IMG/VR virus record: IMGVR_UViG_3300036770_003943
Location: 62,001 to 126,000 of that record
Length of the DNA stretch: 64,000 nt
Reading direction: 5' to 3' (one strand)
Shown: positions 1,598-27,612 of the stretch, in pieces
Layout: each line of letters begins with the position of its first letter
Position numbering within the stretch: the first letter of the stretch is position 1
Position numbers and translations under genes: made by a program
Notes under the pieces: generated by a model
Told to the model about the DNA's origin: nothing
Database searches by the model: none
The model's input: only the letters and a program-made list of their open reading frames with translations

Positions 1598-2190
1598 AAA
1601 TGTAAACCAGTTAGAGTTTTGTCGTCGCCAATATATCCGACAGGAAAGGTATTAAATGCTAAACTTATTCTTGTTTTTTCATTTTCCACTGGCGGCACAT
1701 GATGACCAGTAGAACTTGGAAAAACTAAACAACTATACTGAGTAACAGGATACCACCAACTCGGACTATTAAACACATTGAATTCTTTTGCTGGTATGTC
1801 TAATTGTTTCCAAGAATCTTTATGGAAGTATATACGATCTGAATCGCTGGTTTGAATATAAAATACACCACTTAGAAAACTGTTTGGATGAGCATGTTTA
1901 TGATGGAATTGACCTTTTTCACTATAATTAAACCAGGTTTGAGTCAATCGAAGACGAATATCTTTTTCTGGACAATATAGTTGTGTGAAATATGTGTCCA
2001 CACAAAACTGTACAAATTGTTTAATGTTATTGTGTTCAGGCAAATCTAAAACATAATTATTTTTGCTAGTTGTATTGCCTTCATTTGGGCTACGTTCCAT
2101 ATCAACAATACTTTTAAGTTGTTCATCAGATATGATTTCAGTATACTGAAAAATACCAATGGGGGTGGGCCAAAGACTAAGCGTTTCCAT
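1594..2190 (-). CDS. putative 2OG-Fe(II) oxygenase (TIGR02466-like)
   Basis: LWPTPI N-terminus, TQTWFN, HxHxH-PNSFLSGVFYI, distal HHV and RISLAFN motifs. Confidence 0.8.
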   Translation of the reverse strand: METLSLWPTPIGIFQYTEIISDEQLKSIVDMERSPNEGNTTSKNNYVLDLPEHNNIKQFVQFCVDTYFTQLYCPEKDIRLRLTQTWFNYSEKGQFHHKHAHPNSFLSGVFYIQTSDSDRIYFHKDSWKQLDIPAKEFNVFNSPSWWYPVTQYSCLVFPSSTGHHVPPVENEKTRISLAFNTFPVGYIGDDKTLTGLHL

Positions 2191-2239
2191 ATAAATCCTT
2201 TATATGTAATTATTCTGCTTAGTCTTAATTTAAACTAGG

Positions 2240-5220: not shown

Positions 5221-5559
5221 TTAATCCTTAAATGTGTATGTTTCCCCGGCTGCTAGTGTTATTTTTCTAAATACTCTTTGTGTGCCATTATTATCGTATT
5301 TTAGTGTAACTGTTACACTAGCTGTATCTTTATTATATATGAAAATATTTCTAACTAATCTTCTAGTAGAACTAGCTGGAGCAGAAACTAGTGTTATATC
5401 AGTGGTGTTATTCAGCACACCATCAGTACTACCTTCGGTAAAATCGCTACCATTATTATCTGCCCAAGCTACAGCGAAATCTGGTTGTGTACTAGTAACA
5501 TTGGCAGAAAGAACTGCCTTTAAACTTTTTGTTGTACTATCTAAAATAAGTAATTTCAT
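5221..5559 (-). CDS. small beta-rich virion protein; stand-alone copy of the N-domain of the two Gly-rich proteins
   Basis: ILDSTTKSL..QPDF.V.WADN.GS.FTEGSTDG..RLVRNIFIYNKDT..KYDNNGTQR aligns by eye with both paralogues; ATGA overlap with 5556-8795. Confidence 0.75.
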   Translation of the reverse strand: MKLLILDSTTKSLKAVLSANVTSTQPDFAVAWADNNGSDFTEGSTDGVLNNTTDITLVSAPASSTRRLVRNIFIYNKDTASVTVTLKYDNNGTQRVFRKITLAAGETYTFKD

Positions 5560-8500
5560 GATAAAAACATCGAATAAGCATTGGCTGATGAACTCGATCC
5601 ACCTCCACCTGTAGCACTAATCGTCACGCTACCTGTACCAGCACTTACGCTAATTCCACTTCCTGCTGTGATGCTAGTTACACCGCTGTTAGCTATAGTT
5701 ACAGCCGTTGAACCGTTATAACTGGTTCCAGATAAACCTGTGCCTATTGTTAATGTTGCTAGATTGTTCCCAAGCGTAATACCTGAAATAGTACTGGCTG
5801 CTAACTTACTAACTGCTATGGCAGCACTGGCATTGATATCACTATTTACAATAGTTCCATCGGCTATCATAGTACTAGTAACTGTTCCAGTATCCCCGGT
5901 AGTTACTAATGTACCAGTAGTAGCAGGAATAGTTACAATTACTCCAGAGCCTGCAGTTGATGTGGCTTTAAGATTTAAACTACCGCTAGTAGAGCCACTT
6001 AGGTTTAGGCCGCCTCCGCCGATTGTTGGGGTAGTTAGGCTAGGACTATTGGCAAACACTAATGCTCCGCTGCCAGTTTCATCACTGATTACACCGGCTA
6101 ATTCAGCGCTGGTTGTAGCAGACAACGCACTTAATTTATTACTAGTATAAACAACCGTGCCGCCAGTACCAAATGCAACCGAACTGCCATCAGTGCCAGT
6201 AAATGTCAGTGTATTACTGGCCGTTAAAGTTTTTCCATCCGCTATAGTTAATGTAGATCCAGTTGCTGGTGCTGTAATTGACACTTTGTTAATGCTTGTG
6301 GCACTAGCAACACCTAATGTTGGAGTAACTAAAGTCGGACTAGTTGCTAATACTATTGCTCCTGAACCAGTGGTTCCATTACTTAAATTAGCAGCAGAAA
6401 TTTGACTACCATTAATATGTACTGCGCCTACATCAATAGTTCCTAATGTTCCTGAAACAACTTCGGAAGAAATACTAGCATCAGGAACGAAAATAAACTT
6501 ACCTGTACTGTCATCAAAACCAAAAAAACCAATCTTAGCAGTGCTACCGTTATGCCATTGGAATGAAATACCTCTATCTTTATTGTCGTCGGTTACTGGT
6601 GCTGCGCCTCCAGTAGAACCTCCTATATCAATAATAGGATCAACTATCGTACTTACTGTAGAATTGACTGTGGTAGTTGTGCCGCTAACAGTTAGATTTC
6701 CACCGACTATCACATTTCCAGAGGTGCTTATACCTGCCGCATTAACTGTGCCTGTTAAAGTAGGACTATTGGCAAACACTAATGCTCCGCTGCCAGTTTC
6801 ATCACTGATTACACTGGCTAATTCAGCACTGGTTGTAGCAGCGAAATCGCTTAGTTTATTACTTGTATATGCTACTGTGCCGCCAGTACCAAATGCAACC
6901 GAACTGCCATCAGTGCCAGTAAATGTCAGTGTATTACTGGCCGTTAAAGTTTTTCCATCCGCTATAGTTAATGTAGATCCAGTTGCTGGTTCTGTAATTG
7001 CTAATTTATTAATACTTGTAGCACTAGCAACACCTAATATTGGGGTAATTAGACTAGGACTATTGGCAAACACTAATGCTCCGCTGCCAGTTTCATCACT
7101 GATTACACTGGCTAATTCAGCACTGGTTGTAGCAGAGAAATCGCTTAATTTATTGCTAGTTAAGGCTACTGTTCCTGAACTATCTTGAATTGTTAATGTC
7201 CTAGTTGTTCCAGTTGTAATTCCTGAAAGTTGAAATTGTAATTTTTTAGTTGCGTCTCCGTCGTCGGCAAAATAGGTAGTACTATCTTGTAGTGTTTTAT
7301 TTGTTAGAGTTTGTACTCCGTCTGTAGTTACAACCGTATTATCAATAGCTATGGTTATTCCAGTACTACCATTGTAGCTAGTACCTGACAGGCCTGTACC
7401 AATGGTTAAGGCATTTAGATTATTGCCTAATGTTACACCAGAAATTGTGTTAGCCGCTAGTTTACTTACTTCAATAGCAGCAGTAGTACTAATATCAGCA
7501 TTGACTATACTACCAGTTAGGTTTAATTTGCTATAAGCAATCGCAGCACTGGCATTTACATCAGCATTGACTATACCATCAGTTAGGTTTAATTTGCTAT
7601 AAGCAATCGCAGCACTGGCATTTACATCAGCATTGACTATAGTCCCATCTTCGATCATAGTACTGGTAACTGATCCTGTATCGCCTGTAGTAACTACAGT
7701 ACCAGTTGTAGCTGGAAATGTTATTGTATTAGTACCGGCTATAGCTGCAGCTGATAATGTAATAGTTCCACTAGTACTTCCGTTTAATAATAAATTTTTA
7801 CCGGCCGCTAACGCTAAATGTTCGCTACTAGTCCAAGCATCGGTGGCATCAATCCAATTAAATGTTTTATCTGTAGCGCCTTTTAATGTAATACCACCAC
7901 CATCTGCTGTAGTATCTGTTGGTGTGGCAACATCTCCCAATACAATGTTTTTATCATCTACGCTTATAGTTGTAGAATTAATTGTAGTGGTTGTACCATT
8001 AACTGTAAGATCTCCGCTTACTGTAAGATTATTAAAGGTAACATTATCTGTTGTTGCTACTGGTTGACCGATCGCTATGCTGCCACTGGTGATTGTCACA
8101 CCAGTGCCTGCTGTAAAATGAGCACGAACTTCGCTGGCACTTGGGCCAGTGTAGGTAATTACACCAGTCGAGCTATCATATGATAACGATCCATCTCCAC
8201 CGGCATCAGTTACACTGATTGCTGCTCTAGCATCACTGTCGGTATATTGTGTTATTGAACTAGCAAAAGAAATACTTTTCGGAGAAGCACTGGCGTTAGT
8301 AGTAATTGTCATTCCACTGCCAGCTACAAACTCAACTGTGTCCAATCCTGATGCTACTAAACTAGTTTGACCAGCAACTTGCCATGTTTTAAATGTGCTG
8401 TTCATTAAAATTTTCACAGCGCCACTACCTAAATCAACTACATCAAAACCCGAATCAGTGTCAAATCTAATAGCATTAACGCCAGAAATTTCCCCCGATA

Positions 8501-8795
8501 ACGTGCCAGCGGTGTCTATTTTACCAATGGTCAATGATGTTCCAGCTGTTGGCCCCGTGTAACTAATTACTCCAGTTGAATTATCATAAGAAATATCTCC
8601 TTCTCCGCTAACTTTTGTTACACTAATGGCTGCTCGGGCCCGATCATCTCTATAACTTAGTTCGACAACCGTACCATCTCCCTTTTCAGCAAAGAGCTTG
8701 CCATCAGCAGTGTTTATGGCTAATTCTCCAAGTTCTAGTTGAGCTGCGGTTGGGACTACCCCGGATGTCGAAGAATTTTTAATAATAATGGCCAT
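5556..8795 (-). CDS. tail fibre-like protein (1079 aa)
   Basis: N-terminal LELGELAINTADGKLF anchor motif, Thr/Ser/Gly-rich, NLTVSGTTTTVNS fibre motifs, internal duplications. Confidence 0.8.
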   Translation of the reverse strand: MAIIIKNSSTSGVVPTAAQLELGELAINTADGKLFAEKGDGTVVELSYRDDRARAAISVTKVSGEGDISYDNSTGVISYTGPTAGTSLTIGKIDTAGTLSGEISGVNAIRFDTDSGFDVVDLGSGAVKILMNSTFKTWQVAGQTSLVASGLDTVEFVAGSGMTITTNASASPKSISFASSITQYTDSDARAAISVTDAGGDGSLSYDSSTGVITYTGPSASEVRAHFTAGTGVTITSGSIAIGQPVATTDNVTFNNLTVSGDLTVNGTTTTINSTTISVDDKNIVLGDVATPTDTTADGGGITLKGATDKTFNWIDATDAWTSSEHLALAAGKNLLLNGSTSGTITLSAAAIAGTNTITFPATTGTVVTTGDTGSVTSTMIEDGTIVNADVNASAAIAYSKLNLTDGIVNADVNASAAIAYSKLNLTGSIVNADISTTAAIEVSKLAANTISGVTLGNNLNALTIGTGLSGTSYNGSTGITIAIDNTVVTTDGVQTLTNKTLQDSTTYFADDGDATKKLQFQLSGITTGTTRTLTIQDSSGTVALTSNKLSDFSATTSAELASVISDETGSGALVFANSPSLITPILGVASATSINKLAITEPATGSTLTIADGKTLTASNTLTFTGTDGSSVAFGTGGTVAYTSNKLSDFAATTSAELASVISDETGSGALVFANSPTLTGTVNAAGISTSGNVIVGGNLTVSGTTTTVNSTVSTIVDPIIDIGGSTGGAAPVTDDNKDRGISFQWHNGSTAKIGFFGFDDSTGKFIFVPDASISSEVVSGTLGTIDVGAVHINGSQISAANLSNGTTGSGAIVLATSPTLVTPTLGVASATSINKVSITAPATGSTLTIADGKTLTASNTLTFTGTDGSSVAFGTGGTVVYTSNKLSALSATTSAELAGVISDETGSGALVFANSPSLTTPTIGGGGLNLSGSTSGSLNLKATSTAGSGVIVTIPATTGTLVTTGDTGTVTSTMIADGTIVNSDINASAAIAVSKLAASTISGITLGNNLATLTIGTGLSGTSYNGSTAVTIANSGVTSITAGSGISVSAGTGSVTISATGGGGSSSSANAYSMFLS
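6157..6990. repeat. internal 114-bp identical direct repeat (6157-6270 and 6877-6990; offset 720)
   Basis: Direct comparison of the two segments. Confidence 0.85.
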
Positions 8796-8832: not shown

Positions 8833-10431
8833 TTAGATAATTTTTTTGATTCTATTTCTCGGATAGACCGATCCCGAGCTAGGACGAACCCAATAATTTC
8901 TTTTAGGAAACACGCTACCTGTTTCCACTCTTTCTTTGTAGTAGTACAAATAACGATTAACTGACCCTTGTAAACTGGTAAAATCAGCGCCACCACCTCC
9001 AGTATCAGTAATTTGATTAGTTTTAGCATAATCAATTATATAAGATCTTGCCTGTGCTTGTGTCATACTAGGATATATTTCTAAAGCACAAGCTAAAACT
9101 CCGCAAACTTGTGGACTTGCCATACTTGTTCCAGAGTATCGATCTATGTTATAGCTAGCGTTCCTAGAATCTGTAGTTCCTCCACTATTCACACTGCTCA
9201 TTATGCCTGATCCTGGAGCATATACATCAACTCTAGGACCACACATACTAAATGAAGATTTTGTTTCAGCACTGGTTGTGCCAATTGAACCGACACACAG
9301 CATATTAGGAGTAGCACTAGGAGCACCTCCTTGATGATAGGGTACTGCATAACCTGACCATACATAAAAATTGTTATAGTCTTGACCAGCTGGTACATCA
9401 ATTTTACCATAAAAATTACTAGCAGCTCCTACCATTAAAATACCATCATTCATGGCATCTGTGATATCTGCTTCTAAAGCACTGTATCTAGCCAAGGTAT
9501 AAGCATTTACTCCGTTATTAAAAATTCCATAATTTAACAAAGTAGCTTGATCATAAGGAGCTCCTCCAACATATGCTCCTCGATAAAATATATTAGTGAT
9601 ATCATTGATTGACAAAGTATACGTGTAACCCCAGCTATTATTACAAATAGTTGGGTTTCGTCGACCAGTTACTGGATTAGTACTCTTATTGGCATGAAAA
9701 GCTCTAATATAATCAAAAATCAATAAATCGCTTAGAGCATTTACATCAGTTCCATAAGGAGTAATATTATATATGTTTGCTTTCCTAGCCCAGCCTTGAC
9801 TATTACCTGCTACGGTACCGGCAACATGTGCTCCGTGATTATTATCTCCTATAGCATCTGCTGAACTATAAGGTCCGTAAAGATAGGTTCCGGTTCCTGA
9901 TCCTAAATTATGTTGAAACCAGTTATACTGAATTACTCTTGATCCCCCCGAACCATCATTATTTACTGCGAACTCAGGATGATTTGGATTAACAATTCCG
10001 TCGACAATGACCACATCAACATTTCTGCCTTCACTGGTAACGGTTACTGTTCCTGATTGATTCGCTGTTCCGTCTGTGCCCCAACTGCTACGTTGTTGAC
10101 CTTCAGTACAACGTAATAGTGCCCAATTTTTATCTGTACTATTTAGGCCGCTTTTGCTCCAACTGTTACTTGAATCCGTCCACATTGGGCGTGCTACAAT
10201 ACCTAACTCAGCTGGAGTAAGTTCAACTGCTGCTACCCGGGAATCATTTTTTAGTTGAACAGCTTCCTCTTCAGACAGCATGTAGTGTGTATTTCTGCTG
10301 ATTGGTCTACGTAGTGCCAGATCTACCTTACGATTTGGAATATACAAAGAACCCCCAGGTGATTCCATGTCGTCATAGAAATTATCTAAATCTTCAAATT
10401 GATGTAAAGTGATTACGTATTCTTTTAACAT
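8833..10431 (-). CDS. subtilisin-like serine protease (peptidase S8) with N-terminal prodomain
   Basis: Catalytic triad motifs VDVVIVDG, NHGAHVAGT, SGTSMASPQV; VDVYAPG. Confidence 0.92.
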   Translation of the reverse strand: MLKEYVITLHQFEDLDNFYDDMESPGGSLYIPNRKVDLALRRPISRNTHYMLSEEEAVQLKNDSRVAAVELTPAELGIVARPMWTDSSNSWSKSGLNSTDKNWALLRCTEGQQRSSWGTDGTANQSGTVTVTSEGRNVDVVIVDGIVNPNHPEFAVNNDGSGGSRVIQYNWFQHNLGSGTGTYLYGPYSSADAIGDNNHGAHVAGTVAGNSQGWARKANIYNITPYGTDVNALSDLLIFDYIRAFHANKSTNPVTGRRNPTICNNSWGYTYTLSINDITNIFYRGAYVGGAPYDQATLLNYGIFNNGVNAYTLARYSALEADITDAMNDGILMVGAASNFYGKIDVPAGQDYNNFYVWSGYAVPYHQGGAPSATPNMLCVGSIGTTSAETKSSFSMCGPRVDVYAPGSGIMSSVNSGGTTDSRNASYNIDRYSGTSMASPQVCGVLACALEIYPSMTQAQARSYIIDYAKTNQITDTGGGGADFTSLQGSVNRYLYYYKERVETGSVFPKRNYWVRPSSGSVYPRNRIKKII

Positions 10432-10432
10432 T

Positions 10433-10951
10433 TTAATTTTCTAACTGTAACAATGTTAAAGTTACTGTAATACTTGTTGAACTACCACTTTTGTTTTTTA
10501 CTGCTATAGGTATAGCTGTAGTTGCTGGGCTTTCATTATTAAATCCTAGGGCAGCAGGAGTTATTAATAAAGTTTGAGCACCCGATGTAATTACTTCTGC
10601 TATTACTCCAGAATTGACGCCAGGGTCTTCTGTTTCAGTTCTAGTAGCGTCAGCTGTTCTACTAGCACTATCAGCATAAATTCTTACCCATGCTGCTGCG
10701 CTGGTTTGAACTTTATATAATATATAGGATTTAAAACCAGTAATGTTTATATTTTCACTATCATTATTGGCAATATTAGATGTGCTTTGACTGGCAGTGA
10801 TTCTAGCAGGAGCATAAACCGGAACTCCTCCAGCTGTAGATCCATCGCCTACGTAGACTAATTTTGTGTCTGTTGTATATATAAGCTCGCCTTCAGCAGG
10901 TGTTATTCCTGTTCTAGCTGTGCTCAATCCTCTTTTAATTACAATAGCCAT
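10433..10951 (-). CDS. small virion protein with Mtd_N-like N-terminal fibre anchor
   Basis: MAIVIKRG..PAEGELIYTTDTKLVYVGDGST motif. Confidence 0.7.
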   Translation of the reverse strand: MAIVIKRGLSTARTGITPAEGELIYTTDTKLVYVGDGSTAGGVPVYAPARITASQSTSNIANNDSENINITGFKSYILYKVQTSAAAWVRIYADSASRTADATRTETEDPGVNSGVIAEVITSGAQTLLITPAALGFNNESPATTAIPIAVKNKSGSSTSITVTLTLLQLEN

Positions 10952-10969
10952 ATGTTATCCCCATTCTTA

Positions 10970-10976
10970 TACTTAT
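10970..10976 (-). promoter_or_regulatory. variant late promoter ATAAGTA
   Basis: Occupies the same position as the TAAATA motifs (19 nt upstream of ATG 10951). Confidence 0.45.
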
Positions 10977-11015
10977 CAAAAAATGACATAGAACAGCAGC
11001 CTTATTAGCTGCTTT

Positions 11016-11654
11016 TTACATGGTGTTGAGGAAAATCAGCTGTGTAAGCCTAGAATCAAATACATTTGTCCCGAAGTGGCCGGCTATGCCGTGCCAGAGC
11101 CATGGTCGAAAAAATACTGCCCTATTAAATTTTATTGGAACATTCAACTCAACGTCCCATAGGGACTCATCAAGACCTTGAGTCTCAAAAAACACTTTCA
11201 TATCGTCAAATGTTGTTACACCAATTTTCGCTGCTTCTATAGAATTTATAGGTGCAGTTGACATACCGCTTTCTTTATGTAGATACATTTTAGTGCCTAC
11301 ATCTAATACTTTTCCGTCTTTAATGTAATGCTCCGGTAAACTAAGATATATAACACCAGCCCATGTTTGTTCAGGCTTTGGGTCAAAATGAATAATTTGT
11401 TTTGCTTTGTCTTCTTCGCGAATATATCTGAAATATCCGCAACTTGAAGTTGGAGTTGGATAGACTGGTTCGTTTACGGCTTTAGTGATCAAAGCCTGTA
11501 TTTCGCTACTCCAATATGATTGGAGAGTATTAACGCCTGGGTAATTTTTATCTAAGTCCCATGTCTCATATTCAGCTTCAAGTGCTAATTTTCTTATTAA
11601 TATCGGATCTGGATAAAAATCATCAACTACAATAACTTTTTTATCAAATTTCAT
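11016..11654 (-). CDS. putative 2OG-Fe(II) oxygenase (DUF6445-like)
   Basis: VIVVDDFYPDP..IR..AL, YPG, HFD (HxD), WAGVIYLS, FNRAVFF..WHG. Confidence 0.7.
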   Translation of the reverse strand: MKFDKKVIVVDDFYPDPILIRKLALEAEYETWDLDKNYPGVNTLQSYWSSEIQALITKAVNEPVYPTPTSSCGYFRYIREEDKAKQIIHFDPKPEQTWAGVIYLSLPEHYIKDGKVLDVGTKMYLHKESGMSTAPINSIEAAKIGVTTFDDMKVFFETQGLDESLWDVELNVPIKFNRAVFFRPWLWHGIAGHFGTNVFDSRLTQLIFLNTM

Positions 11655-12484
11655 TCCAACCCCATTTCTCTCCTTATATTAGTGGCGCTTATGCTAGTTA
11701 TACTGTCATCAAAAGTTTCTTCGCCACTGGTATACCCAACACCCCTACCCCAACCAATATGTACAATATTCGGTACTAACATAATTTCATATTGACCTTG
11801 GTATAAGGGATCCAAATCGCGCTTAATATAGTTTTTAACTTCATCTACGCTGAAAGGATTACTATTTTGCCAGCCTTGAACATCACGTATTTGAATAATG
11901 ACTTGTCCTGTTTTTTCAAGCAGTCTTTCAAATAACGCTCGATGGCCCGGGTGCCATGGTTGCCAACGACCTAGCATTTGTACAGTTTCTTTACGCCAAT
12001 CAAATCTTGGTCTACGACGACCTTCGAGAATATGTGATCCAACAAAAGGTACCCAATGTTCTGCGTTTTGCTCAGTTATCCTAAAATCATATAAGTCAGG
12101 AGAAATAAAAGCACGATTAGTATCTTCATATCGACCAGCATCAATGGTATCCATCCATATTGTCCAATCTGCTTTAAAATTATGGCGCATTTCCGGTAAT
12201 GGAGCTACAAAATCACAAATAACATAATCACTTACAGATTTTATAGCAAACTCGAACATACGTATACTTTGACGAATGCGACCTTCTTTGCTAAAATCCC
12301 AGTCATTATATCTTTTACGAACATCGTCAGCATTAAACCACTCTACTTTGGCATTTATTCGAGGATGTGCTGTATCAGGCACAATGTCATGAGTCATACC
12401 GTGAAATTCTAGATATCGTTTTAGTCGTTCGGCGAAGTAGGTTTTACCTGCTCCAGGCAAGCCCATAATTAATATTTTTTCCAT
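11651..12484 (-). CDS. APS-kinase (CysC)-like P-loop kinase fused to an HxGH nucleotidyltransferase domain
   Basis: GLPGAGKT P-loop, NADDVR, FSKEGRIRQ, ICDFVAP; C-terminal GRWQPWHPGH motif. Confidence 0.8.
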   Translation of the reverse strand: MEKILIMGLPGAGKTYFAERLKRYLEFHGMTHDIVPDTAHPRINAKVEWFNADDVRKRYNDWDFSKEGRIRQSIRMFEFAIKSVSDYVICDFVAPLPEMRHNFKADWTIWMDTIDAGRYEDTNRAFISPDLYDFRITEQNAEHWVPFVGSHILEGRRRPRFDWRKETVQMLGRWQPWHPGHRALFERLLEKTGQVIIQIRDVQGWQNSNPFSVDEVKNYIKRDLDPLYQGQYEIMLVPNIVHIGWGRGVGYTSGEETFDDSITSISATNIRREMGLE

Positions 12485-12488
12485 GAAC

Positions 12489-13112
12489 TTATTTTTTAGT
12501 TGATTTAGTATTTTTTGCTAGAAAATCTACTTGTCGACCGGGCTTATGAACTCTAATAAAAATCTTTACAAGCTCTGCAACATTGCTCATAGTATTCATA
12601 TTGATGTTTAATTGTGCTGGACCAAGTAATCCTATTTCTTGCTGTTCACGCCAGTAAGGAATAATATCATATGTTTCATCATATACTTCAAGATCTACAC
12701 CATGATAAAGTCCGAACGTGCTTTCCCCTAGATTTTTTTCTATAGTAAGTACATTATTATTTTGATCGAACATTTTAAATGTCTTCGAAGTTAATACTCG
12801 CACATGAGTATAGTCATCCCACATAAGATCGCAACGATGATGCGGGACGCAGATGAACCATTCTGCTTGATCGGCACTTACTCGATACATTTCCTGTATT
12901 ACTCGAGTAAACACCTTAGGATCTTGTCCCACATGTTCTAATACATTATCTGCGTGAATATGTGTAAAGAAATTATCTTCATAGGGCCACGGAAACTGTT
13001 CAATATCTAAAACTTGATCAGGATTACATATCGGAGATATATCTATATTCCAATGATCATTTAACTTTCTAAAACCGCAACCAATATTTAATTTATTATG
13101 CTCTGGTGTCAT
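12489..13112 (-). CDS. class I SAM-dependent methyltransferase
   Basis: LNIGCG motif I, NIDIS, NVLEHV, EMYRV. Confidence 0.8.
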   Translation of the reverse strand: MTPEHNKLNIGCGFRKLNDHWNIDISPICNPDQVLDIEQFPWPYEDNFFTHIHADNVLEHVGQDPKVFTRVIQEMYRVSADQAEWFICVPHHRCDLMWDDYTHVRVLTSKTFKMFDQNNNVLTIEKNLGESTFGLYHGVDLEVYDETYDIIPYWREQQEIGLLGPAQLNINMNTMSNVAELVKIFIRVHKPGRQVDFLAKNTKSTKK

Positions 13113-13124
13113 GTTGTCCTCTTC

Positions 13125-13919
13125 TTAAATCCAAGCGTTCCAAAAAACTTCTCGGTTATACTGCTCGTATAACTCTAGCCCAATATACTGTACACAATTA
13201 ACTGTGGTTTTTTGAATACTTGATTTGATTTTGTGTAAATCTTTATAGCCGATTGCAACATCAACATAATGCTCTGTTTGTTCAATACGATTAAAATCAT
13301 GCTCAAAATTAGGTAACTCAAAAAAGTCATAGATACGTTTGGTTTGACTCTTGGGACTATTACAAAATCTAGCGTAATCTACAAAAAGTAATCTATCTAA
13401 ATAACCCATTGTAATAGCATCCTTAATGGATCTGTGACTCATACCTAACGGGCCTTCAGGACCTGCTACATAATATGCTCTAGTAGCAATATTACTTTGA
13501 TCTTTAAGATACTGATCGCTTCGAGCATAATACAAAGGATTCTGATTACGTAGACGTTCAAAACTTGTTACAATTTCTGCTGGATTACGCACACAAACAA
13601 GCATTTTTACTTCACGATCAAGTACTGCTTCTAACTGAGCAATTTGACTTACCCAACCTCTGTCTTTATCAAAAATAACTGGCTTATCAATGTGATTGTA
13701 ATAACCATCTAAGGTTCCTTTGAGTACACCTTTTAGTGCTTGATCATTTTGATATTCTCTATTCTGTTCAAAATTACCCCAATTGGCTTGTAAACTACCA
13801 AATACCCCTGACAAACTGCTAACTCCTTCTCCATGAATTTCAGGATTCTGTTTTAGAATATTTGCCAATAGAGTCGAGCCTGATCTTGGTAAACCGGTAA
13901 TAAAATGTAATGTTTTCAT
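13125..13919 (-). CDS. sulfotransferase family protein
   Basis: 5'-PSB motif FITGLPRSGSTLL; 3'-PB-like CVRNPAEIVTS. Confidence 0.85.
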   Translation of the reverse strand: MKTLHFITGLPRSGSTLLANILKQNPEIHGEGVSSLSGVFGSLQANWGNFEQNREYQNDQALKGVLKGTLDGYYNHIDKPVIFDKDRGWVSQIAQLEAVLDREVKMLVCVRNPAEIVTSFERLRNQNPLYYARSDQYLKDQSNIATRAYYVAGPEGPLGMSHRSIKDAITMGYLDRLLFVDYARFCNSPKSQTKRIYDFFELPNFEHDFNRIEQTEHYVDVAIGYKDLHKIKSSIQKTTVNCVQYIGLELYEQYNREVFWNAWI

Positions 13920-13946
13920 AAATCCTCATTAAAGTAGTATATAACT

Positions 13947-13953
13947 TACTTAT
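13947..13953 (-). promoter_or_regulatory. variant late promoter ATAAGTA
   Basis: Upstream of the sulfotransferase RBS (GAGGA). Confidence 0.4.
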
Positions 13954-15062
13954 TAGTGTAAATCAGTTAGTTTTACGTCGCTGCTTACAACTATTCCTGT
14001 ACTGTCTACGAGTTCGGCTTCCATATTTTTAGAATTTGTTTTAGGAAATTTTAATTGTAATTCTTCCGCAACTCTCTGAAATGTATCTTCCCACTGACCA
14101 AATTTGGTTTGTCTAAAAACTCTAGTTGTTTCCTCATACCACGGACTGTGCTCACCGCCGTAAGCCCAGACATGGTAGGGTAATATAGGCACAACAACCC
14201 AAGTCGGTTTACCCATGGCTGCTGCTGCGTGAGCTATGCTAGTACAACTAGTAATAATAAGATCCATGTTTTCAATTGCTGCTAAAGTATCTTCCCAACT
14301 GATAAGAAGATGCTGTAGATCAATAATTTCTTCAGGTAATTCTCTTACATCATTATCTCTTTGTAAGCTGTAAAATTGTAAATGATCATTATCTTTGTAA
14401 AGGTTAATTAATAATTCGCTAGGAAAAATTCTAAATTGTTGATGTTCAAATTTGGGATTACCGCTCCAGCGAATACCAATTTTTTTCTTAGATGTATTCA
14501 TAAAATTTTGCCATACTTTAACACTATCGTGGCTGGCAAAAAGATAAGGTTCACGTGGCAATGTATCAAAAGTATGACCGAACAACCAACTACAACTAAA
14601 GCTAGGAATCCAAAAATCATGTTGCGTAGTAGAAAATTCATCTAAGGTGATACATTTTTGAACACCTGGTACTCTACTAAACATACTATGCATGGGCTTT
14701 TCGCAGCAAAGAATAGCTTTGCCGCCTCTGCGCCAAATTTCAGTAGCGAACCGAGCATAGATAATTTGATCACCAATACCTGCTTCTAGATTAATTATAA
14801 CAGTTTTACCTGTTAAGTCAGTCTGATCCCAAACTGGCTTAGTAGTATTAGGCTTTTGACTGCCATATACGTTTAAATGTCTGCCTGATTCGAGCAATTT
14901 AAACCCAGCCTGTAAGTCTCCTTTATAGAGTAAAAACCATCCTCTATTAAATCTTGCTCGTAAATCATCGGGCATTTGTTGATGTAGTTCTTCAGCAATT
15001 TTCCAGCCTTCTTCAAACCTACCCCTAATCATTAAATTCAATTGTTGATCAATTAAGTGCAT
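13953..15062 (-). CDS. TPR-like + GT-B (GT9-like) glycosyltransferase
   Basis: EAGIGDQIIYARF, KIGIRWSGNP, FYSLQR, DLIITSCTSIAHAAAAMGKPTWV, SPWY. Confidence 0.8.
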   Translation of the reverse strand: MHLIDQQLNLMIRGRFEEGWKIAEELHQQMPDDLRARFNRGWFLLYKGDLQAGFKLLESGRHLNVYGSQKPNTTKPVWDQTDLTGKTVIINLEAGIGDQIIYARFATEIWRRGGKAILCCEKPMHSMFSRVPGVQKCITLDEFSTTQHDFWIPSFSCSWLFGHTFDTLPREPYLFASHDSVKVWQNFMNTSKKKIGIRWSGNPKFEHQQFRIFPSELLINLYKDNDHLQFYSLQRDNDVRELPEEIIDLQHLLISWEDTLAAIENMDLIITSCTSIAHAAAAMGKPTWVVVPILPYHVWAYGGEHSPWYEETTRVFRQTKFGQWEDTFQRVAEELQLKFPKTNSKNMEAELVDSTGIVVSSDVKLTDLH

Positions 15063-15078
15063 AAATTATTCCTATAAC

Positions 15079-15119
15079 AAAAAAATCAGCTAGTACATTG
15101 TTTATTATACTAGCTGATT
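15079..15119 (-). terminator. Rho-independent terminator after RCC1 gene A
   Basis: 12-bp perfect stem AATCAGCTAGTA/TACTAGCTGATT (15084-15095/15108-15119) followed by a U-run on the minus strand (A7 at 15079-15085). Confidence 0.75.
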
Positions 15120-15143: not shown

Positions 15144-18100
15144 CTAAATTGTTTTTAGTGTTACTGTTTGAGCACCACCTGCACTGGCTGTTAAGTGGTC
15201 GGTGTCGCTGCCAACTTGTACCGGACTACTACGAGTTGTAATTGTTCCATCACCTAGTTGCCCATTGGCGTTGTAACCCCAAGCATATAAATCTCCTGTG
15301 CTTCTAACACCCACTGTGTGCCAAGTACCAGCATCGACTGCGGTCCATGATCCAGAACCAACTTGTGTTGGGGCATCAGCATTTGTTGTAGTACCAAGTC
15401 CTAATTGTCCGTAGTTGTTTCTGCCCCAGGTATATAAACCACTATTAGTTTTAATACCTGCTGTGTGTTGATTGCCTGCGGTGATTGCGGTCCAACTTCC
15501 ACCGCCAGCTACTGCCACCGGACTACTGTAACTAGCTGGCTGCGGTCCAGTAATAGTTGTATTTTCAGCCGGGGTACCAGAACTTGCTAGATTACCGTCC
15601 ATTGGAAGATTGTTGTAATTACTCCAAGCATAAAGTTTACCAGTACTAGTAATGGCCCCATTCACTCCAAAGTGGGTAAAGGCGTTATGGCCTTTTGGTA
15701 CAGCAGTAAATGATACCCCCACAGCAAGCTGTACAGGACTATTTGAGCTGGAAGTATTGTTACCTATCGAACCAAACTGAGTTCTACCCCAAGCATACAA
15801 GGCACCGTCTGGTTGTATGCCTAATAATAATCTGCCTACATAACCAATTGCTGTCCAGCTATCTGTGCCTAACTTAGATAGTGTGTACTGAAAATTGACA
15901 TTATTTATAGTTTGAGTAAATCCTGAGTAATAAAGTTCGCCTGTCGAAGCTAATGCGGCCATACAGCCTATTGCACCTCCGCAGACTGCTGTAAAACTTT
16001 TACCTAAAGATGATCCAATTTGAACAGGACTTGATCTGTTAGTTGATGTGCTAGAAATTCCAATTCCTAAGGCAACACCGTAACCCATTCCCCATAATGT
16101 TCCGTCTGATTTGATAGCCATATTCGCAGCGTCTGAAGATCCAACTTGAATCCAATCGGTGTCTGTGCCTACCTGTACCGGAGTTAGACGGTCTGTGGTA
16201 TCATTATGACCTAATTGCCCTTTATGGTTTTTCCCCCATGTCCAAAGTGTTCCATCAGATTTAATTCCTATAGCACTTCCAGTACTAGCACCTTCACTGA
16301 TGCTTACAATCGACCAGCTTCCAGGCACTTGTGTTGGAGTCGAAACCGATAAGGTGTCACCAAGACCTAATTGTCCTGCGGCATTATTACCCCAGCCCCA
16401 TAAGGTTCCATTTGTTTTTATTGCAAATGCCTGATATTGACCTGAAATTATCTTACTCCAATCACTATCAGTTCCTATTAAGTTTGGCGAGTATCTATCA
16501 GTGGTAGTAATAGGAAGACCTAAATTGTTATAGCTGTTAAACATCGACCATCCCCATAGTCTGCCGCTAGTGGTTATTACGTGAATAGTATCATATTGTA
16601 CTCCAATTGCAGCAAAACTAGCTATGTCAGCTGGTCCAGCAACCTGTGTTGAATCATTTTTACCCCAAGCAAACAGTGTGCCATCTGACTTAATTGCTGC
16701 TGTATGACTACTACCGGCTGCTACTGCTGTCCAACTGCTAGTACCTACCTGTACTGGACTGCTTAAGTTTGTAGTATTTGCTTGTCCTAGTTGTCCAATG
16801 TTATTCAATCCCCAAGCAAACAGGCCGCCGTCCTTGCGTACTGCTACACTATGACTGCCACCAGCTGCTACAGCAGTCCAACTACTAGTGCCTATTTGTA
16901 CTGGGCTACTACGGCTAGTTGTTGTTCCATCACCTAGTCTACCTGTGCCGTTATTACCCCACACAAAAAGTCCGCCATCACTGCGAATGGCCATGCTGTG
17001 AGCATCACCTGCCGATACTGCTGTCCAACTGCTAGTGCCTACCTGTACTGGACTACTTTTTACTGCGCTGGTTCCATCTCCTAGCTGGCCCGAACTGTTA
17101 ACTCCCCAAGCATACAATGTTCCGTCACTGCGAATTGCCAATGTATGATTAGCACCAGTGCTAGCTGATTGCCAAGTTTCAGTGCCGAGTTTAACAGGAC
17201 TTGTTTGAGTTGAAGTTAAATTACCTCCCACTAGGTTTGGTAGCCAGTAGGCATTACCGGAAATTAGTTGGCCTGTATCGTTTATATTGCCGCTTAATCC
17301 ATATGATTCTAACCAACCCCATCCATATAATAAGCCGTCTGATTTAATACCAAAGGTATGTTTAGCATTTATATCAAGGGCATTTTGTCGAATAATAGTC
17401 CAACTACCTGAAATTTGAGTTGGATTACTATTCGCTGTAGTATTGCCTTGGGCTCCTTGACCGTATGAGCCTGCACCCATGTGATAGGCTGTACTGTTAG
17501 TTTTGATTAGATAATTTGCGTGTCTACCTGCTGATACTTTTTGCCAATCTGTATCTGTGCCCACTTGTGTTACTGTGGATCTTGCTGTGGTATCATTTAA
17601 TCCTAACTTCCCGTTAGTATTGTCTCCCCAGGACCATAATGTTCCGTCTGTTCTTACACCAATAGTATGATTAAAGCCTGATGCTATAGCTGACCAGCTT
17701 GCTGTACCTAACTGTACTGGACTAGATACTGATGTTGGTACTGTGCCTACTAGGCCAGTGGCGGTAGCAGTTGACCCGGAAGAGGTACCATCACCAAAAC
17801 TACCACTTATATTATATCCCCAATAATAACCAATTTTATCAGAACCTACAGCCCATCTTGGATTAGCAACATCAGTAAACCTGGTGCTTACTATCGTCCA
17901 GCTAGATGCACCAATCTGTATAGGACTAGTTATATTTTGACCGTAACTACCTGAGTCATCTCCGGTGTAATATGGAGTATAAAAATATCCCCATTTCCAC
18001 AATTTTCCATCAGTAGTGAGGCCGTTTACAGCAGTATAGATACTATTAACATCAGTAGTCGATCTGGCGGTGAATGCACCCACCATTGACCAACTTTTAG

Positions 18101-21100
18101 TATCATCGAGCAGTTGTGGGACAAACCTTCGCGTACGAGCATTTCTAAGCAGTTGACCGTACTCAGACTGACCCCAACCCCATAAACTTCCTACGCTATC
18201 AATAGCAAACGATTGCCATTTTGATGTGTAAGCACGAGTAAAAGTAGGTACACTATCTAATCGTGGACCATCGAGCCAATTAGATGAATTCGCTGAAGAA
18301 TTGTCATTTTTGCCAATATAAGCTCTTGTGGGTGTTGGAACATAATTTCCTTCTGGCCTTGATTGAGCAGGGAACGCACCAAAAATTACAGGATTTGAAA
18401 TATCTGGTTCAGTTGCGGTCAAAGCCCACTCAATCTCTCTACCAGTTGCTCTTGCTTGTGTGGTAAACCATAACACACCAGACTCTGACAGATATAATCC
18501 CATAGAAGGACGACCATATGTTGAATGTGTTCTTGTCGCACTAGCAAATTTCATAGTTGGCTGTGTTCCAATAGCAGCGAATGATGTAATTTGTACTGGG
18601 GTTGTACTACTAACAGGAAAATGTGGAACTACCGATCTTCCGCCCCAAGCCCACATTGTGCCATCTGTTTTAGTACCAATGGTGTGGGTTTCAAAATCAA
18701 CAAGACTATATCTGGGATTTGACTGACCAAGACTTACATGTTTCCAAGTATGTCCTCCCGAAACTAGTACAGGGCTATTCAGAGGAGTAGATGGGTAAGG
18801 ATAAGCATTACCATCACCTAGGCCGCCGCCTTTTCCGCAGCCCCACATATATAAGGAACCATCAGTTCTAATAGCTGCTGAGTGCGCTGCCCCTATGTAC
18901 ACTGCAGTCCAACTGTCTGTACCTACCTGTACTGGACTGCTACGAGCTGTAGTAGTTCCATCGGCTAATCTATTTCCGTATGTGGTACTAGTACCTGTTC
19001 CAGGTTTGCCCCAAGTAAATAGTCCGCCGTCACTACGAACAGCAGCACTAATGCCCATAGTACCGACCGAAATCCAGCTATCCGTGCCGATTTGTGTTGG
19101 ACTTGAACGGTTGGTTGTATCTCCTAATCCTAATTGTCCGACAACATTATTTCCCCACCCAAACAGTGCTCCGTCTGCTCTAATAGCTAAAACTGCGCCG
19201 AAACCAGTACCACTTGTATAACGATTATTACTAGTATGTTCTGTACCACCTATACTAAAGTCACGCCATTTGTCTGCGCCAATACGAGTTGGGGTAGTTG
19301 GGGTAGAAGCATCGTTTAGGCCTAGTTGTCCAAAGTTGTTCGTGCCCCAGCTGTACAGGGCTCCTTCCTCAGTAATACCGATATAGGCCGCATTGTGCTG
19401 CATTACTTTCTTGAAATTCAATGGTCCAGTATCAAATTTTATCAATACTGGACTATCTTTGTTCGAATACCAAACAGTTCCGTCATTTTTAACACCAAGA
19501 AATTGTAGATCACCAGCATCAACATGTTTCCAATAGTCGATAGTTCCTCCCACAGATGGCTGGTTTCTGTTTAATTCTGAAGTACCCCAGGTGTAAAGAT
19601 TTCCTCCTCGAATTCCTACGCTATGACTTGTTGCTGTGCTTATAGCCGTCCAGCTTTCATTGTAGGTGTTGATATTTGGTGTTGGTGTAGTATACACACG
19701 ATCCTCAGTATAAGCCCTGGCGACACCACCTCCCATGGCCCATAGTCTATTATATTCATCTATTAGGCAATTATAGTAGTCTCCAGGAACGAAGGGAGCT
19801 TTGGCGAATTTATATTTTCTAGTACCAATTTGTACAGGACTACTTCTCGAAACTGTATCTCCTAGCCCTAGTTCTCCTATACTGTTTTTACCCCAAGCCC
19901 ACGCATAGCCCGAGGAGTCAATGCCTAGAGCAGTGACAACACTAGGGTTACCACCGCCTATGCTAATCTGTACCCAACTGCCTGTACCTACCTGTACAGG
20001 ACTGCTTCGATCAGTGGTTGTTCCGTCACCTAAAATTCCGTCACTATTTTTACCCCAAGTAAATAAACCACCGTCAGCTCTAATAGCAGCTGAAGTTAAA
20101 TTTACTGTTGCTACTGACAGCCATTTATCAGATCCTACCTGTACAGGACTGCTTATGCTGGTAGTGTTTGCCAGACCTAATTGTCCTGAACTATTATTAC
20201 CCCAAGCCCATAATGCCCCAGCACTATCAATTGCCAATGTACTATCTGATATAGAAATAGCTGCCCAACTTCTTGTTCCTAATTGTACAGGGCTACTACG
20301 ATTTGTTTTGTCGTTCAAACCCAATGGGCCGTATGTAGTATTTCTACCCCAAACAAATAATGCGCCATCTGATCTAATAGCAGCAGAATTTAGATTTCCT
20401 GCAGAAACGCTTACCCAACTATTTCCTGTACCAATTTGAATAGGACTACTTTTTCCTGTGCCGACTGTAGTGCCATCACCAAGTTGGCCATCACTATTTT
20501 GTAAGTTTAATGACCAAGCCCATAGTGTTCCATCGTTTTTGATTCCTAGTGTGTGATTTCTGCCTGCTGATATTTGTTTAAAATTTGAAGCAAATAAGGC
20601 TGGACTAACATTTTTCAGTGTCCAAACTTCGCCATTTTCTTTTAGAATCATTGAATACACGTTCTGACCTTCTACAGTGGCATGAATAATGCCGCTTTCT
20701 TGAACCATAACCGGACTAGACGTGCTATCTCCAGCTAGTCCATTGGCTCTATTGGTACCTGAACCTGTTACAAAAAGTCTATTAGGTTTGCCCCCACTGC
20801 CACCGGCGTTAATATTTGGTGACGCCGATAATAAGAATGTGAATCCGTTACCGGCTGCTACTCCGTTGCTTAACCATTCACCTACGCTGCCGAACGCAGT
20901 TGGTACACTACGATTTGTTGTGTCTCCTAGTCCTAACTGCCCTGAACTGTTTAGTCCCCAAACATAAAATTGTGCGTTCATAGGATAATAAGCAAACACA
21001 TGTTTATTACCAACACTTAATGTTGAATAAAAATCACTGCCAACTTGAACAGGACTTGATCGGTTCGTTGTGTCTCCTAACCCAAGTTGTCCTTGATCAT

Positions 21101-21878: not shown

Positions 21879-21965
21879 AATTTGGCTCCGATTTAGATTA
21901 ATAGTATTTAGCTAAATCGAAGCCATGTCAATTAAATTAAACTGTTTTTAGTGTAATTGTATGAG
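21846..21965. repeat. 120-bp identical block spanning gene B end, intergenic region and gene A start (copy 1; copy 2 at 27493-27612)
   Basis: Direct comparison, offset 5647. Confidence 0.9.
21884..21924 (-). promoter_or_regulatory. RBS-occluding hairpin with late promoter (CTAAATA, 21905-21911) in the loop
   Basis: Minus strand GGCTTCGATTTAG-15 nt-CTAAATCGGAGCC: 13-bp stem with one G-U; GGAG RBS is in the 3' arm. Confidence 0.75.
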
Positions 21966-27525: not shown

Positions 27526-27612
27526 AATTTGGCTCCGATTTAGATTAATAGTATTTAGCTAAATCGAAGCCATGTCAATTAAATTAAACTGTTTTTAGTG
27601 TAATTGTATGAG
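27493..27612. repeat. 120-bp identical block (copy 2 of 21846-21965)
   Basis: Direct comparison. Confidence 0.9.
27531..27571 (-). promoter_or_regulatory. RBS-occluding hairpin with late promoter in the loop (identical to 21884-21924)
   Basis: Identical sequence; TAAATA at 27552-27557. Confidence 0.75.

Follow-up and report, generated by a model that had tools for sequence, protein, structure and literature searches.

A candidate minimal PAPS synthase in a jumbo phage: fusion of an APS-kinase-like domain to a small NMNAT-like nucleotidyltransferase

The locus and its genes

The gene described here lies in a 64,000-nucleotide stretch (referred to below as the window) of the IMG/VR virus record IMGVR_UViG_3300036770_003943, corresponding to positions 62,001 to 126,000 of that record. 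An ATG-started open reading frame encodes a 277 amino acid protein comprising an N-terminal APS-kinase-like domain (K) joined to a C-terminal HxGH nucleotidyltransferase domain of ~118 amino acids (N), confirming the domain architecture proposed in the initial annotation. The gene is real and not a chance ORF: more than 7,900 homologues are present in the 90%-cluster database, with 1,896 representatives at 50% identity and 518 viral contigs. A nucleotide search of the locus against 50,697 phage records found nothing. The coordinates of the gene, its conserved motifs and its neighbours are listed in Table 1.

Table 1. Genes, domains and motifs at the K-N locus (window coordinates)
Feature	Coordinates	Strand	Length or residues	Remarks
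K-N fusion gene	11651..12484	-	277 aa	AlphaFold model pLDDT 90.6, pTM 0.81
K domain	12011..12484	-	residues 1 to about 158	Lid-less APS-kinase fold
P-loop GLPGAGKT	12440..12463	-	residues 8-15	G8, G13 and K14 invariant in 35 sequences
Insertion of 19 aa	12347..12403	-	residues 28-46	Found in this phage group, absent from SAR11/SAR86 K proteins; lowest-confidence part of the model (pLDDT 67 for residues 31-40)
APS-site block FNADDVRKRYNDWDFSKEGRIRQSIRM	12257..12337	-	residues 50-76	Aligns to LDGDxxR...GFSxxDR of solved APS kinases; R56 and F64 invariant, D53 and R69 at least 90% conserved
DFVAP	12200..12214	-	residues 91-95	Counterpart of the FISP motif whose backbone NH groups bind phosphosulfate
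RYEDTN	12116..12133	-	residues 118-123	Y119 aligns with the second adenine-stacking Phe; D121 and T122 at least 90% conserved
N domain	11654..12007	-	residues 160-277	Minimal NMNAT-derived HxGH nucleotidyltransferase, proposed sulfate adenylyltransferase; separate model pLDDT 90.1
GRWQPWHPGH	11942..11971	-	residues 172-181	Nucleotide-binding HxGH motif; G172, R173, Q175, P176, H178, G180 and H181 invariant or at least 90% conserved
NPF	11852..11860	-	residues 209-211	Shared with archaeal NMNAT (1f9a, 2qjt); N209 and P210 invariant in the cleaner family alignment
WGRGVGY	11732..11752	-	residues 245-251	G246, R247 and G250 family-invariant, flanking the deletion; candidate second-substrate site (inferred)
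ISATNIR	11672..11692	-	residues 265-271	SxTxxR phosphate-binding motif of the superfamily; S266 and R271 conserved
Sulfotransferase	13125..13919	-	264 aa	PF13469 56.5 bits, PF00685 46.9 bits; GLPRSGST at 13872-13895, RNPAEIVTS at 13563-13589; presumed PAPS consumer
Methyltransferase-like protein	12489..13112	-	207 aa	phrog_6636 E 5.1e-9; weak Methyltransf_11/23 hits; recurs beside K-N in several related loci
Protein of unclear fold	13953..15062	-	369 aa	Faint GT9 hit only; fused to the sulfotransferase in related phages
DUF6445 protein	11016..11654	-	212 aa	PF20043 36.4 bits, phrog_1644; start overlaps the K-N stop codon by 4 nt

The sulfotransferase located two genes upstream of K-N is also real, and its GLPRSGST and RNPAEIVTS motifs are probably the two PAPS-binding motifs. 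Together with the methyltransferase-like protein, the DUF6445 protein and the 369 amino acid protein, it forms a small modification cluster that sits among fibre-type genes. In five related phage loci the sulfotransferase and the 369 amino acid protein are fused to give proteins of 523-617 amino acids. Neither is a close homologue of the 520-600 amino acid SAR11 sulfotransferases, with only the motif region around GLPRSGST matching. No Sat, CysD or AprA was found in the 232 kb of phage genome sequence examined.

The K and N domains

Residues 1 to about 158 match the Pfam APS_kinase family PF01583 at 21.6 bits, barely above the cut-off of 21.1, and KTI12 at a similar weak level, whilst the NCBIfam apsK model scores the protein at only 13.8 bits against a cut-off of 138.7; homologues reach up to 61 bits with PF01583. 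A 35-sequence family profile hits solved APS kinases at E 8.5e-15 (2yvu), and about the top 20 Foldseek matches of the AlphaFold model are genuine APS kinases (for example 7yq1, 3cr7, 4bzp and 2ofx, prob 1.00). The residues that bind APS in Mycobacterium tuberculosis (Mtb) CysC, namely D480 (2'-OH), R483 and R497 (phosphosulfate), F492 and F576 (adenine stacking) and the backbone NH groups of Ile523 and Ser524 (PMC4373884), align to D53, R56, R69, F64, Y119 and the DFVAP motif, respectively, although the first Asp of the LDGD motif is N or A in most members. Some longer homologues (336-489 amino acids) carry additional domains, but these were inconsistent (DUF4118, chorismate synthase and DHQS fragments) and several look like assembly chimeras; they were not used further.

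The K domain does, however, lack the mobile lid (residues 552-581 in Mtb CysC) that carries the Arg that stacks on ATP and the catalytic Lys that contacts the gamma-phosphate (PMC4373884). About 21 residues preceding Y119 are absent relative to canonical APS kinases from three SAR11 genomes (designated G042, G019 and G060); in contrast, a short kinase encoded next to Sat in another genome retains a lid-like segment and is a divergent CysC. K could therefore be slow, inactive on its own, or dependent on N. It is also conceivable, though unlikely, that K is non-catalytic and serves only as an APS/PAPS-binding regulatory module, as may be the case for the APS-kinase-like C-terminal domain of fungal ATP sulfurylase, so that the protein makes or uses APS but not PAPS. 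That several SAR11 genomes encode an additional canonical APS kinase elsewhere (in G060 between sulfotransferases, and also in G016, G019, G025 and G037) is consistent with this. The conservation across the family of the P-loop residues and of the catalytic-site D53 nevertheless suggests selection on catalysis, and in G042 a canonical APS kinase occupies exactly the position of K, implying that K normally provides that activity.

By sequence, the N domain is a cut-down archaeal-type NMNAT. It matches CTP_transf_like weakly (17.1 bits, below the cut-off of 21), archaeal NMNAT/NadM models in NCBIfam at 27-28 bits (against cut-offs of 127-181) and the NMNAT MJ0541 at profile E 3.4e-11, whilst the best Foldseek match is archaeal NMNAT 4yp7 at 27% identity. 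The ESM Atlas gave only 'putative cytidyltransferase' labels. Structural comparison with VIA-align placed PPAT (Z 9.6), NadM (9.4), NMNAT (9.0), NadR (8.5) and ATP sulfurylase 1v47 (8.4, 115 of 118 residues aligned) all within about 1 Z. A segment of about 23 amino acids, lying between the third strand and the R-x-G-F element of true NMNAT, is deleted in every N member relative to an NMNAT from Thermoplasmata. N is not a canonical Sat: there is no PF01747 hit and no PUA-like domain, and hhalign aligns only 20 columns covering the HxxH helix (probability 3.6%), with no counterpart of the GxxKxxD mobile loop aligned. At the positions of the Sat sulfate-binding residues Gln199 and Arg201 (QxRN), N has G-R-[FW]-Q. 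A G-R-[GDK] triplet (G246, R247) is invariant but aligns to the R-E-K-G-F segment of a true NMNAT.

Given these similarities, N might still be an NMN (or NaMN) adenylyltransferase, and the fusion an NAD-related enzyme, for example a permuted NadR-like riboside kinase plus NMNAT, or an NMNAT plus a kinase acting on NAD, that in phages would help restore NAD(P) during infection. The K profile weakly hits the NadR kinase domain (E 3e-5), a COG3236 (NADAR-family) gene overlaps the K-N start in Sano-type phages, and distant phage members lie in replication or early modules. We consider this doubtful, however, as the scores are far below the NMNAT family cut-offs, the 23 amino acid segment is missing, K matches APS kinases ten orders of magnitude better than it matches NadR, and no NAD-pathway gene recurs among the neighbours annotated.

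Gene context and a proposed role in sulfate activation

What decides the reading is gene context. The same two domains are encoded by separate overlapping genes in SAR11 and SAR86 and are fused as K-N in phages and Alphaproteobacteria. In addition, N is fused to full-length canonical APS kinases in Omnitrophota (PF01583 192 bits) and Acidobacteriota (173 bits), in the reverse order in Planctomycetota (136 bits), and is adjacent to them in SAR11 genome G042, Flavobacteriaceae, Marinimicrobia and Peribacteria. Three of these loci carry further sulfur genes: two sulfotransferases in Omnitrophota, two sulfatases plus TauE in Planctomycetota, and CysD and CysN in Acidobacteriota.

Intriguingly, N is also found without K in the position that sat holds in sulfur oxidisers. 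In two loci the gene order is N, aprM-like, aprB, aprA on one strand and, by coordinates, seven sampled SAR11 genomes have N upstream of aprA with no K gene found beside it, matching the sat-aprMBA arrangement of A. vinosum (PMC3779200). Among 61 Pelagibacteraceae genomes, 21 of 22 AprA-carriers have N (odds ratio 81, p 9e-9), 26 of 29 N-carriers lack Sat and CysDN, and 18 of 21 sulfotransferase-carriers have N or CysDN. These co-occurrence statistics are not corrected for phylogeny and many of the genomes are incomplete. That N is present in only 29 of the 61 genomes argues against K and N being the CoA or NAD(P) enzymes of SAR11.

Taken together, these results favour a model, more likely than not in our view, in which the N domain transfers AMP from ATP to sulfate (ATP + sulfate <-> APS + PPi) and the K domain phosphorylates the 3'-OH of APS to give PAPS, pulling the unfavourable first step forward, with the PAPS feeding the nearby sulfotransferase in this phage. 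Both catalytic activities, sulfate as the substrate of N, and the target of sulfation are inferred; no enzyme activity has been shown. The initial annotation, which suggested a minimal non-canonical PAPS synthase serving the sulfotransferase, is thus supported, with two qualifications. First, N is not a small Sat but descends from the NMNAT lineage, so that any sulfurylase activity would be an independent invention. Second, the link to a phage sulfotransferase is partial: a homologue was found within 8 kb of K-N in only 20 of 80 related phage loci, and one relative genome rated 100% complete and three complete isolate genomes carry the fusion with no Sulfotransfer_3 gene. The alternative offered in the initial annotation, activation of a sugar or phosphonate, is not excluded but has no support here.

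The association with AprBA can be read in another way. N might act on APS or PAPS differently, for example as an APS:phosphate adenylyltransferase (ADP sulfurylase) or only in the direction APS + PPi -> ATP + sulfate, with APS coming from host AprBA or host sulfurylase. In SAR11, AprBA could supply APS without N; N lacks the Sat sulfate-binding residues; and in Acidobacteriota a CysDN sulfurylase sits next to the N-APS kinase fusion, so N is not always the only sulfurylase, although A. vinosum also has both Sat and CysDN (PMC3779200). This reading appears unlikely. Fusing two competing APS consumers has no obvious benefit, whereas sequential enzymes are the ones usually fused, and fusions of N to APS kinase arose in both orders in several lineages. 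ATP sulfurylase is in any case reversible (PMC3779200), making 'reverse only' a physiological distinction and not a different enzyme. Furthermore, the modules comprising APS kinase, N and a PK-barrel protein in G042 and the Flavobacteriaceae locus have no sulfurylase gene beside them; G042 has no Sat or CysDN match genome-wide and the Flavobacteriaceae genome has neither Sat nor CysD.

A further possibility, also improbable, is that N adenylylates (or nucleotidylates) a different anion or phospho-compound that K then 3'-phosphorylates, giving a PAPS-like donor for a non-sulfate group, as in the Campylobacter Cj1416/Cj1415 route to 3'-phospho-CDP-phosphoramidate (PMC11800397) or as PPAT plus dephospho-CoA kinase do for CoA. 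PPAT is the top structural match to N by a small margin, loss of the lid could open the acceptor site of K to a bulkier group, and a methyltransferase neighbours K-N in the window and in Omnitrophota. Against this, the partners of N elsewhere are high-scoring canonical APS kinases in specifically sulfur-related contexts.

SAR11 genomes have long been described as carrying aprBA and a 'cysC' whilst lacking sat and cysDNCHIJ (PMC3448164; PMC5069961), leaving unexplained the fate of the APS made by AprBA and the source of PAPS for their sulfotransferases. We found no prior description of the proposed enzyme. At its broadest, and only slightly more likely than not, N would define a third, independently evolved class of ATP sulfurylase, about 120 amino acids in length, NMNAT-derived and GTP-independent, that is the 'missing sat' of SAR11, SAR86 and several other lineages. 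With AprBA it would turn sulfite into sulfate plus ATP and with a lid-less or canonical APS kinase it would make PAPS, the pair having been captured by phages as a fused auxiliary gene allowing them to sulfate their own or host structures independently of host sulfate activation. Such an enzyme would change how sulfite oxidation and sulfation are scored in metagenomes, where these genes are currently labelled 'cytidyltransferase' or 'hypothetical', and would add a new solution to a classic thermodynamically difficult reaction; a 277 amino acid PAPS synthase could also offer a compact tool for PAPS regeneration in biocatalysis.

Comparison with known enzymes

The Campylobacter MeOPN donor pathway resembles the proposed system in that a nucleotidyltransferase (Cj1416) and a 3'-kinase (Cj1415) build a 3'-phospho-nucleoside-5'-diphospho-X donor for glycan decoration (PMC11800397). 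That pathway uses CTP and phosphoramidate and needs the phosphoglutamine hydrolase Cj1417 and the glutamine kinase Cj1418; no large glutamine-kinase-type protein or amidohydrolase family appears among the five cluster genes or the two genes just downstream (encoding an Mtd_N protein and a subtilase) in the window.

The archaeal NMNAT and NadM enzymes (MJ0541 1f9a; M. thermautotrophicus 1ej2/4yp7; NadM 2qjt) are closest to N by sequence (22-28% identity), sharing GRFQPFHxGH, NPF, R-x-G-[FY] and SGTxIR motifs, but in N the C-terminal helices are missing in addition to the deleted segment, and the partners of N are APS enzymes rather than NAD-pathway genes. With ATP sulfurylase Sat (PF01747), N shares the superfamily fold, the HxxH motif and the SxTxxR motif (SGTxxR in ATP sulfurylase; PMC3779200), as well as the same genomic partners, namely APS kinase fusions and the slot upstream of aprMBA. 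It is, however, much smaller (about 118 amino acids, against 312-356 for the three SAR11 Sat proteins aligned here).

The K domain shares with CysC (Mtb 4bzp, P. chrysogenum 1m7g, A. fulgidus 7yq1) the P-loop kinase fold, the Asp, Arg-pair and aromatic-sandwich APS site and the FISP-like strand, but LDGD reads NAD and the lid is deleted. Finally, the metazoan-type bifunctional PAPS synthases (PAPSS1/2; for example 1x6v) have the same proposed overall chemistry and the same domain order, with APS kinase at the N-terminus and adenylyltransferase at the C-terminus, and K matches the PAPSS1 kinase domain structurally (2ofx, 1x6v). The phage protein is less than half the size (277 amino acids, against 586-630 residues for the PAPSS1 chains compared), its kinase lacks the lid, and its proposed sulfurylase module is NMNAT-derived and not homologous at profile level.

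The K-N fusion gene and its predicted domains

The K-N gene begins with ATG and encodes a 277-aa protein. Domain matches obtained with the single sequence are weak but agree with one another: residues 4-104 match the APS_kinase family PF01583 at 21.6 bits (against a cut-off of 21.1) and KTI12 at a similar level, residues 172-210 match CTP_transf_like at 17.1 bits (below the cut-off of 21) and the NCBIfam models for archaeal NMNAT and NadM score 27-28 bits, far below their cut-offs. A match to PHROG 10255 (annotated ‘kinase’) is seen at 4.9e-40. The gene is real: it has more than 7,900 homologues in a database clustered at 90%, many of them 73-82% identical and located on contigs of up to 361 kb, with 1,896 representatives at 50% identity and 518 confirmed viral contigs. 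The genome itself is an IMG/VR virus record of 231,776 bp with a GC content of 38.5% and an estimated completeness of 65%, whose UvsX protein is closest to those of jumbo phages of the Rak2/GAP32/CBB/Atu_ph07 type (350-490 kb). DNA near-identical to the region around K-N is found in subsurface (probable source), aquaculture and freshwater metagenome runs from several studies, but in no RNA run.

To examine the N-terminal K domain (residues 1 to about 158), we used an alignment of 35 sequences to generate an AlphaFold model (pLDDT 90.6, pTM 0.81). About the top 20 Foldseek matches to this model in the PDB are genuine APS kinases at a probability of 1.00, including those of A. fulgidus (7yq1), P. 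chrysogenum (3cr7 and 1m7g), Mtb CysC (4bzp) and human PAPSS1 (2ofx), and the family profile hits APS kinases at E 8.5e-15. The structure of Mtb CysC has revealed details of the APS site (PMC4373884): Asp480 of the LDGD motif contacts the 2'-OH, Arg483 and Arg497 contact the phosphosulfate, Phe492 and Phe576 sandwich the adenine, the backbone NH groups of Ile523 and Ser524 contribute to the site and a lid (residues 552-581) carries Arg559 and Lys562. In HMM alignments these map to D53, R56, F64, R69, the DFVAP strand and Y119 of the phage protein, with R56 and F64 being invariant and D53 and R69 at least 90% conserved. When aligned with canonical APS kinases from SAR11 genomes, however, the K family lacks about 21 residues, corresponding to the lid. 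K is thus an APS-kinase-fold domain with an intact nucleotide-acceptor site and P-loop but no lid.

The C-terminal N domain (residues 160-277) was also modelled in isolation from its own alignment (pLDDT 90.1). Its best Foldseek matches are archaeal NMNATs, with 27% identity over about 80 columns, whilst an exhaustive VIA-align search places several enzymes within about one Z unit of each other: PPAT (9.6), NadM (9.4), M. jannaschii NMNAT (9.0), NadR (8.5) and T. thermophilus ATP sulfurylase (8.4, with 115 of 118 residues aligned). Fold alone therefore does not identify the substrate. By sequence, N belongs to the NMNAT lineage: the profile hits MJ0541 at E 3.4e-11 and N shares GRFQPFHxGH, NPF, an R-x-G-[FY] element and SGTxIR. 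Compared with a genuine Thermoplasmata NMNAT recovered in our genome scan, however, every N member lacks the same segment of about 23 residues. Profile-profile comparison with three real Sat proteins aligned only the HxxH helix (20 columns, probability 3.6%), and the sulfate-binding Gln and Arg of the Sat QXRN motif (PMC3779200) are not found at equivalent positions. N is therefore neither a member of the Sat family nor a complete NMNAT.

Gene neighbourhood of K-N in phages

K-N is the fourth gene of a five-gene cluster that lies between giant fibre-type proteins on one side and an Mtd_N protein, an S8 subtilase and a 1,079-aa fibre on the other, and is embedded among receptor-binding-type genes. 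Coordinates of these and other features are collected in the table below. Across 80 related IMG/VR loci (63-75% identity) the neighbourhood is highly variable. A homologous sulfotransferase lies within 8 kb of K-N in 20 of these loci, and in several related phages (loci L020, L032, L033, L035 and L073) the sulfotransferase is fused to the 369-aa protein to give a single protein of 523-617 aa, implying that the two act together, although the 369-aa protein itself has only faint Pfam hits (GT9, DOT1).

Not all K-N genes have such company. A relative genome of 383 kb rated 100% complete carries K-N with no Sulfotransfer_3 match, as do the complete genomes of phages Sano, DLP_6 and Bacata, and distant members of the family sit in early or replication modules. 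In Sano/Salvo-type phages, a gene annotated as COG3236/GTP cyclohydrolase II overlaps the start of K-N and, as these genomes have no Sulfotransfer_3 gene, the role of the fusion there may differ. Within the 231,776 bp of the present phage record, there is no Sat, no CysD/CysH-type gene and no AprA.

Coordinates of the K-N gene, its neighbours and other features noted in phage and cellular sequences
Sequence	Coordinates	Strand	Feature
Window	2240-3634; 3644-5218	-	Two adjacent Gly_rich_2-domain proteins (464 and 524 aa), downstream of the fibre gene
Window	15144-33223 (-); also 5556-8795, 8833-10431, 10433-10951		Three giant proteins (2,244, 1,862 and 1,879 aa), the first reading as RCC1-like repeats by eye; nearby a 1,079-aa fibre-like protein, an S8 subtilase and an Mtd_N (tropism-determinant N-terminal) protein
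Window	13953-15062	-	369-aa protein, first of the cluster in order of transcription
Window	13125-13919	-	Sulfotransferase, second of the cluster
Window	12489-13112	-	Methyltransferase-like protein, third of the cluster
Window	11651-12484	-	K-N, fourth of the cluster
Window	11016-11654	-	DUF6445 protein, fifth of the cluster
Window	10400-15100		Region with near-identical DNA in metagenome runs
G000 contig, outside the window	219325-220404	-	Second HxGH nucleotidyltransferase gene (359 aa, GGGFQPFHEGH; PF01467 25.7 bits) with a long C-terminal extension
Locus L001 (phage Sano)	4559-5002		147-aa gene annotated COG3236/GTP cyclohydrolase II
Locus L003 (phage Bacata)	4559-5002		147-aa gene annotated COG3236/GTP cyclohydrolase II
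Locus L173 (SAR11 genome G042)	1192-2199	-	Truncated pyruvate kinase (barrel domain only, 335 aa)
Locus L159 (Flavobacteriaceae)	1716-2723	+	Truncated pyruvate kinase (barrel domain only, 335 aa)
SAR11 genomes G041, G048 and G042	G041:C11:36274-36606; G048:C1:283943-284289; G042:C8:7196-7543		Variant N genes: one inside a 465-aa open frame (a possible further fusion), one split across two frames, one flagged with an internal TAA by six-frame search

N, APS kinases and AprBA in cellular genomes

The evidence that we regard as decisive comes from the context of these genes in cells. A scan of one genome per prokaryotic species identified the family in dozens of Pelagibacteraceae (SAR11) single-cell genomes, in SAR86 and in marine and soil Alphaproteobacteria. 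In SAR11 and SAR86 the two domains are encoded by separate genes, with K being about 135 aa and N about 124-130 aa, that overlap by 1-11 nt, whereas in other lineages they are fused. Variations on this arrangement are seen in SAR11: in three single-cell genomes (loci L106, L108 and L135) an autotransporter gene of 754-778 aa is inserted between K and N, whilst in loci L144, L149, L153 and L154 a longer K variant (164 aa) plus N sits between a type I secretion ABC/HlyD pair and a convergent aprM-like/aprB/aprA cluster, together with a 116-aa protein of unknown function and a GST-like gene.

N also pairs with full-length, lid-bearing APS kinases. In SAR11 genome G042 and in a Flavobacteriaceae genome, the APS kinase is followed by N and then immediately by a truncated pyruvate-kinase barrel that might regenerate ATP for the module, and in Marinimicrobia and Peribacteria the APS kinase and N genes are adjacent. 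Omnitrophota and Acidobacteriota encode N-APSK fusions (PF01583 at 192 bits over the whole profile and 173 bits, respectively) and Planctomycetota an APSK-N fusion (136 bits). The neighbours of these fusions are two sulfotransferases plus a methyltransferase in Omnitrophota, two sulfatases plus a TauE exporter in Planctomycetota, and CysD plus CysN in Acidobacteriota. Four of five such distant genomes have no Sat or CysD, although these assemblies are incomplete.

To investigate the link to AprBA, we searched 61 Pelagibacteraceae genomes of at least 85% completeness. N is present in 29 and AprA in 22, of which 21 also have N (odds ratio 81, Fisher p 9e-9), although these statistics are not corrected for phylogeny. 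Sulfotransfer_3 is present in 21 genomes, of which 15 have N and three more have canonical CysD plus CysNC. CysD plus CysNC is found in four genomes, none of which has N, and Sat in three. Thus, 26 of 29 N-carriers have no recognisable sulfurylase, and 14 of those 26 also have sulfotransferases.

In SAR11 loci L151 and L155 the gene order on one strand is N, an AprM/QmoC-like membrane protein, AprB (190 bits) and AprA (990 bits), with no K gene. Gene coordinates place N directly upstream of aprA, with no K gene found beside it, in seven sampled genomes (designated G013, G030, G036, G047, G060, G064 and G068), whilst in an eighth (G012) the order is K, N, then aprA about 2.2 kb downstream on the same strand. 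This is the position of sat in the co-transcribed sat-aprMBA operon of A. vinosum, an organism that also keeps a separate CysDN (PMC3779200). The SAR11 literature reports aprA and ‘cysC’ in the same five of seven strains, with sat and cysDNCHIJ absent, and interprets AprBA as sulfite detoxification (PMC5069961; PMC3448164). We found no paper proposing an alternative sulfurylase.

A proposed sulfurylase and its relationship to known sulfate activation

Three independent kinds of partner share a single metabolite, APS: kinases that consume it, a reductase that makes or consumes it and sulfotransferases that act downstream of it. The enzyme that normally keeps this company is ATP sulfurylase, and the repeated fusion of N to APS kinases in both orders is what one expects of consecutive steps. 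N keeps every nucleotide-binding residue of an adenylyltransferase, whilst the deletion removes a segment that, on our reading of the NMNAT fold, contributes to the second-substrate side. On balance, and with moderate confidence only, since activities, substrate and target are all inferred, we conclude that N catalyses ATP + sulfate <-> APS + PPi and that the phage K-N fusion is a minimal PAPS synthase. The missing lid, the absence of the Sat sulfate-binding residues, the presence of a CysDN neighbour in Acidobacteriota and the many phages without a sulfotransferase are real counter-points to this view. In the present genome K-N would serve the adjacent sulfotransferase, and the placement of the cluster among fibre genes suggests, by inference, that virion or host-surface structures are the target.

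Some indication of the origin of the family comes from a tree of N domains (119 columns, of limited resolution), which places the N domains partnered with canonical APS kinases in Omnitrophota, Acidobacteriota, Planctomycetota, Peribacteria and Marinimicrobia next to the NMNAT outgroup. The Flavobacteriaceae N is the exception, falling, unresolved, in the other clade. The phage group that includes the present sequence forms a weakly supported cluster inside a group containing SAR86 and AprBA-linked SAR11 sequences, whereas Sano- and DLP_6-type phages fall elsewhere, suggesting several transfers between cells and phages.

The proposed activity is of particular interest because it would make a long-standing gap in SAR11 sulfur metabolism directly testable. 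The overall logic, in which a kinase–sulfurylase fusion makes PAPS, is already known. What would be new is the sulfurylase module, as an independently derived and much smaller solution, whilst the kinase differs from known APS kinases as a new variant that lacks the lid.
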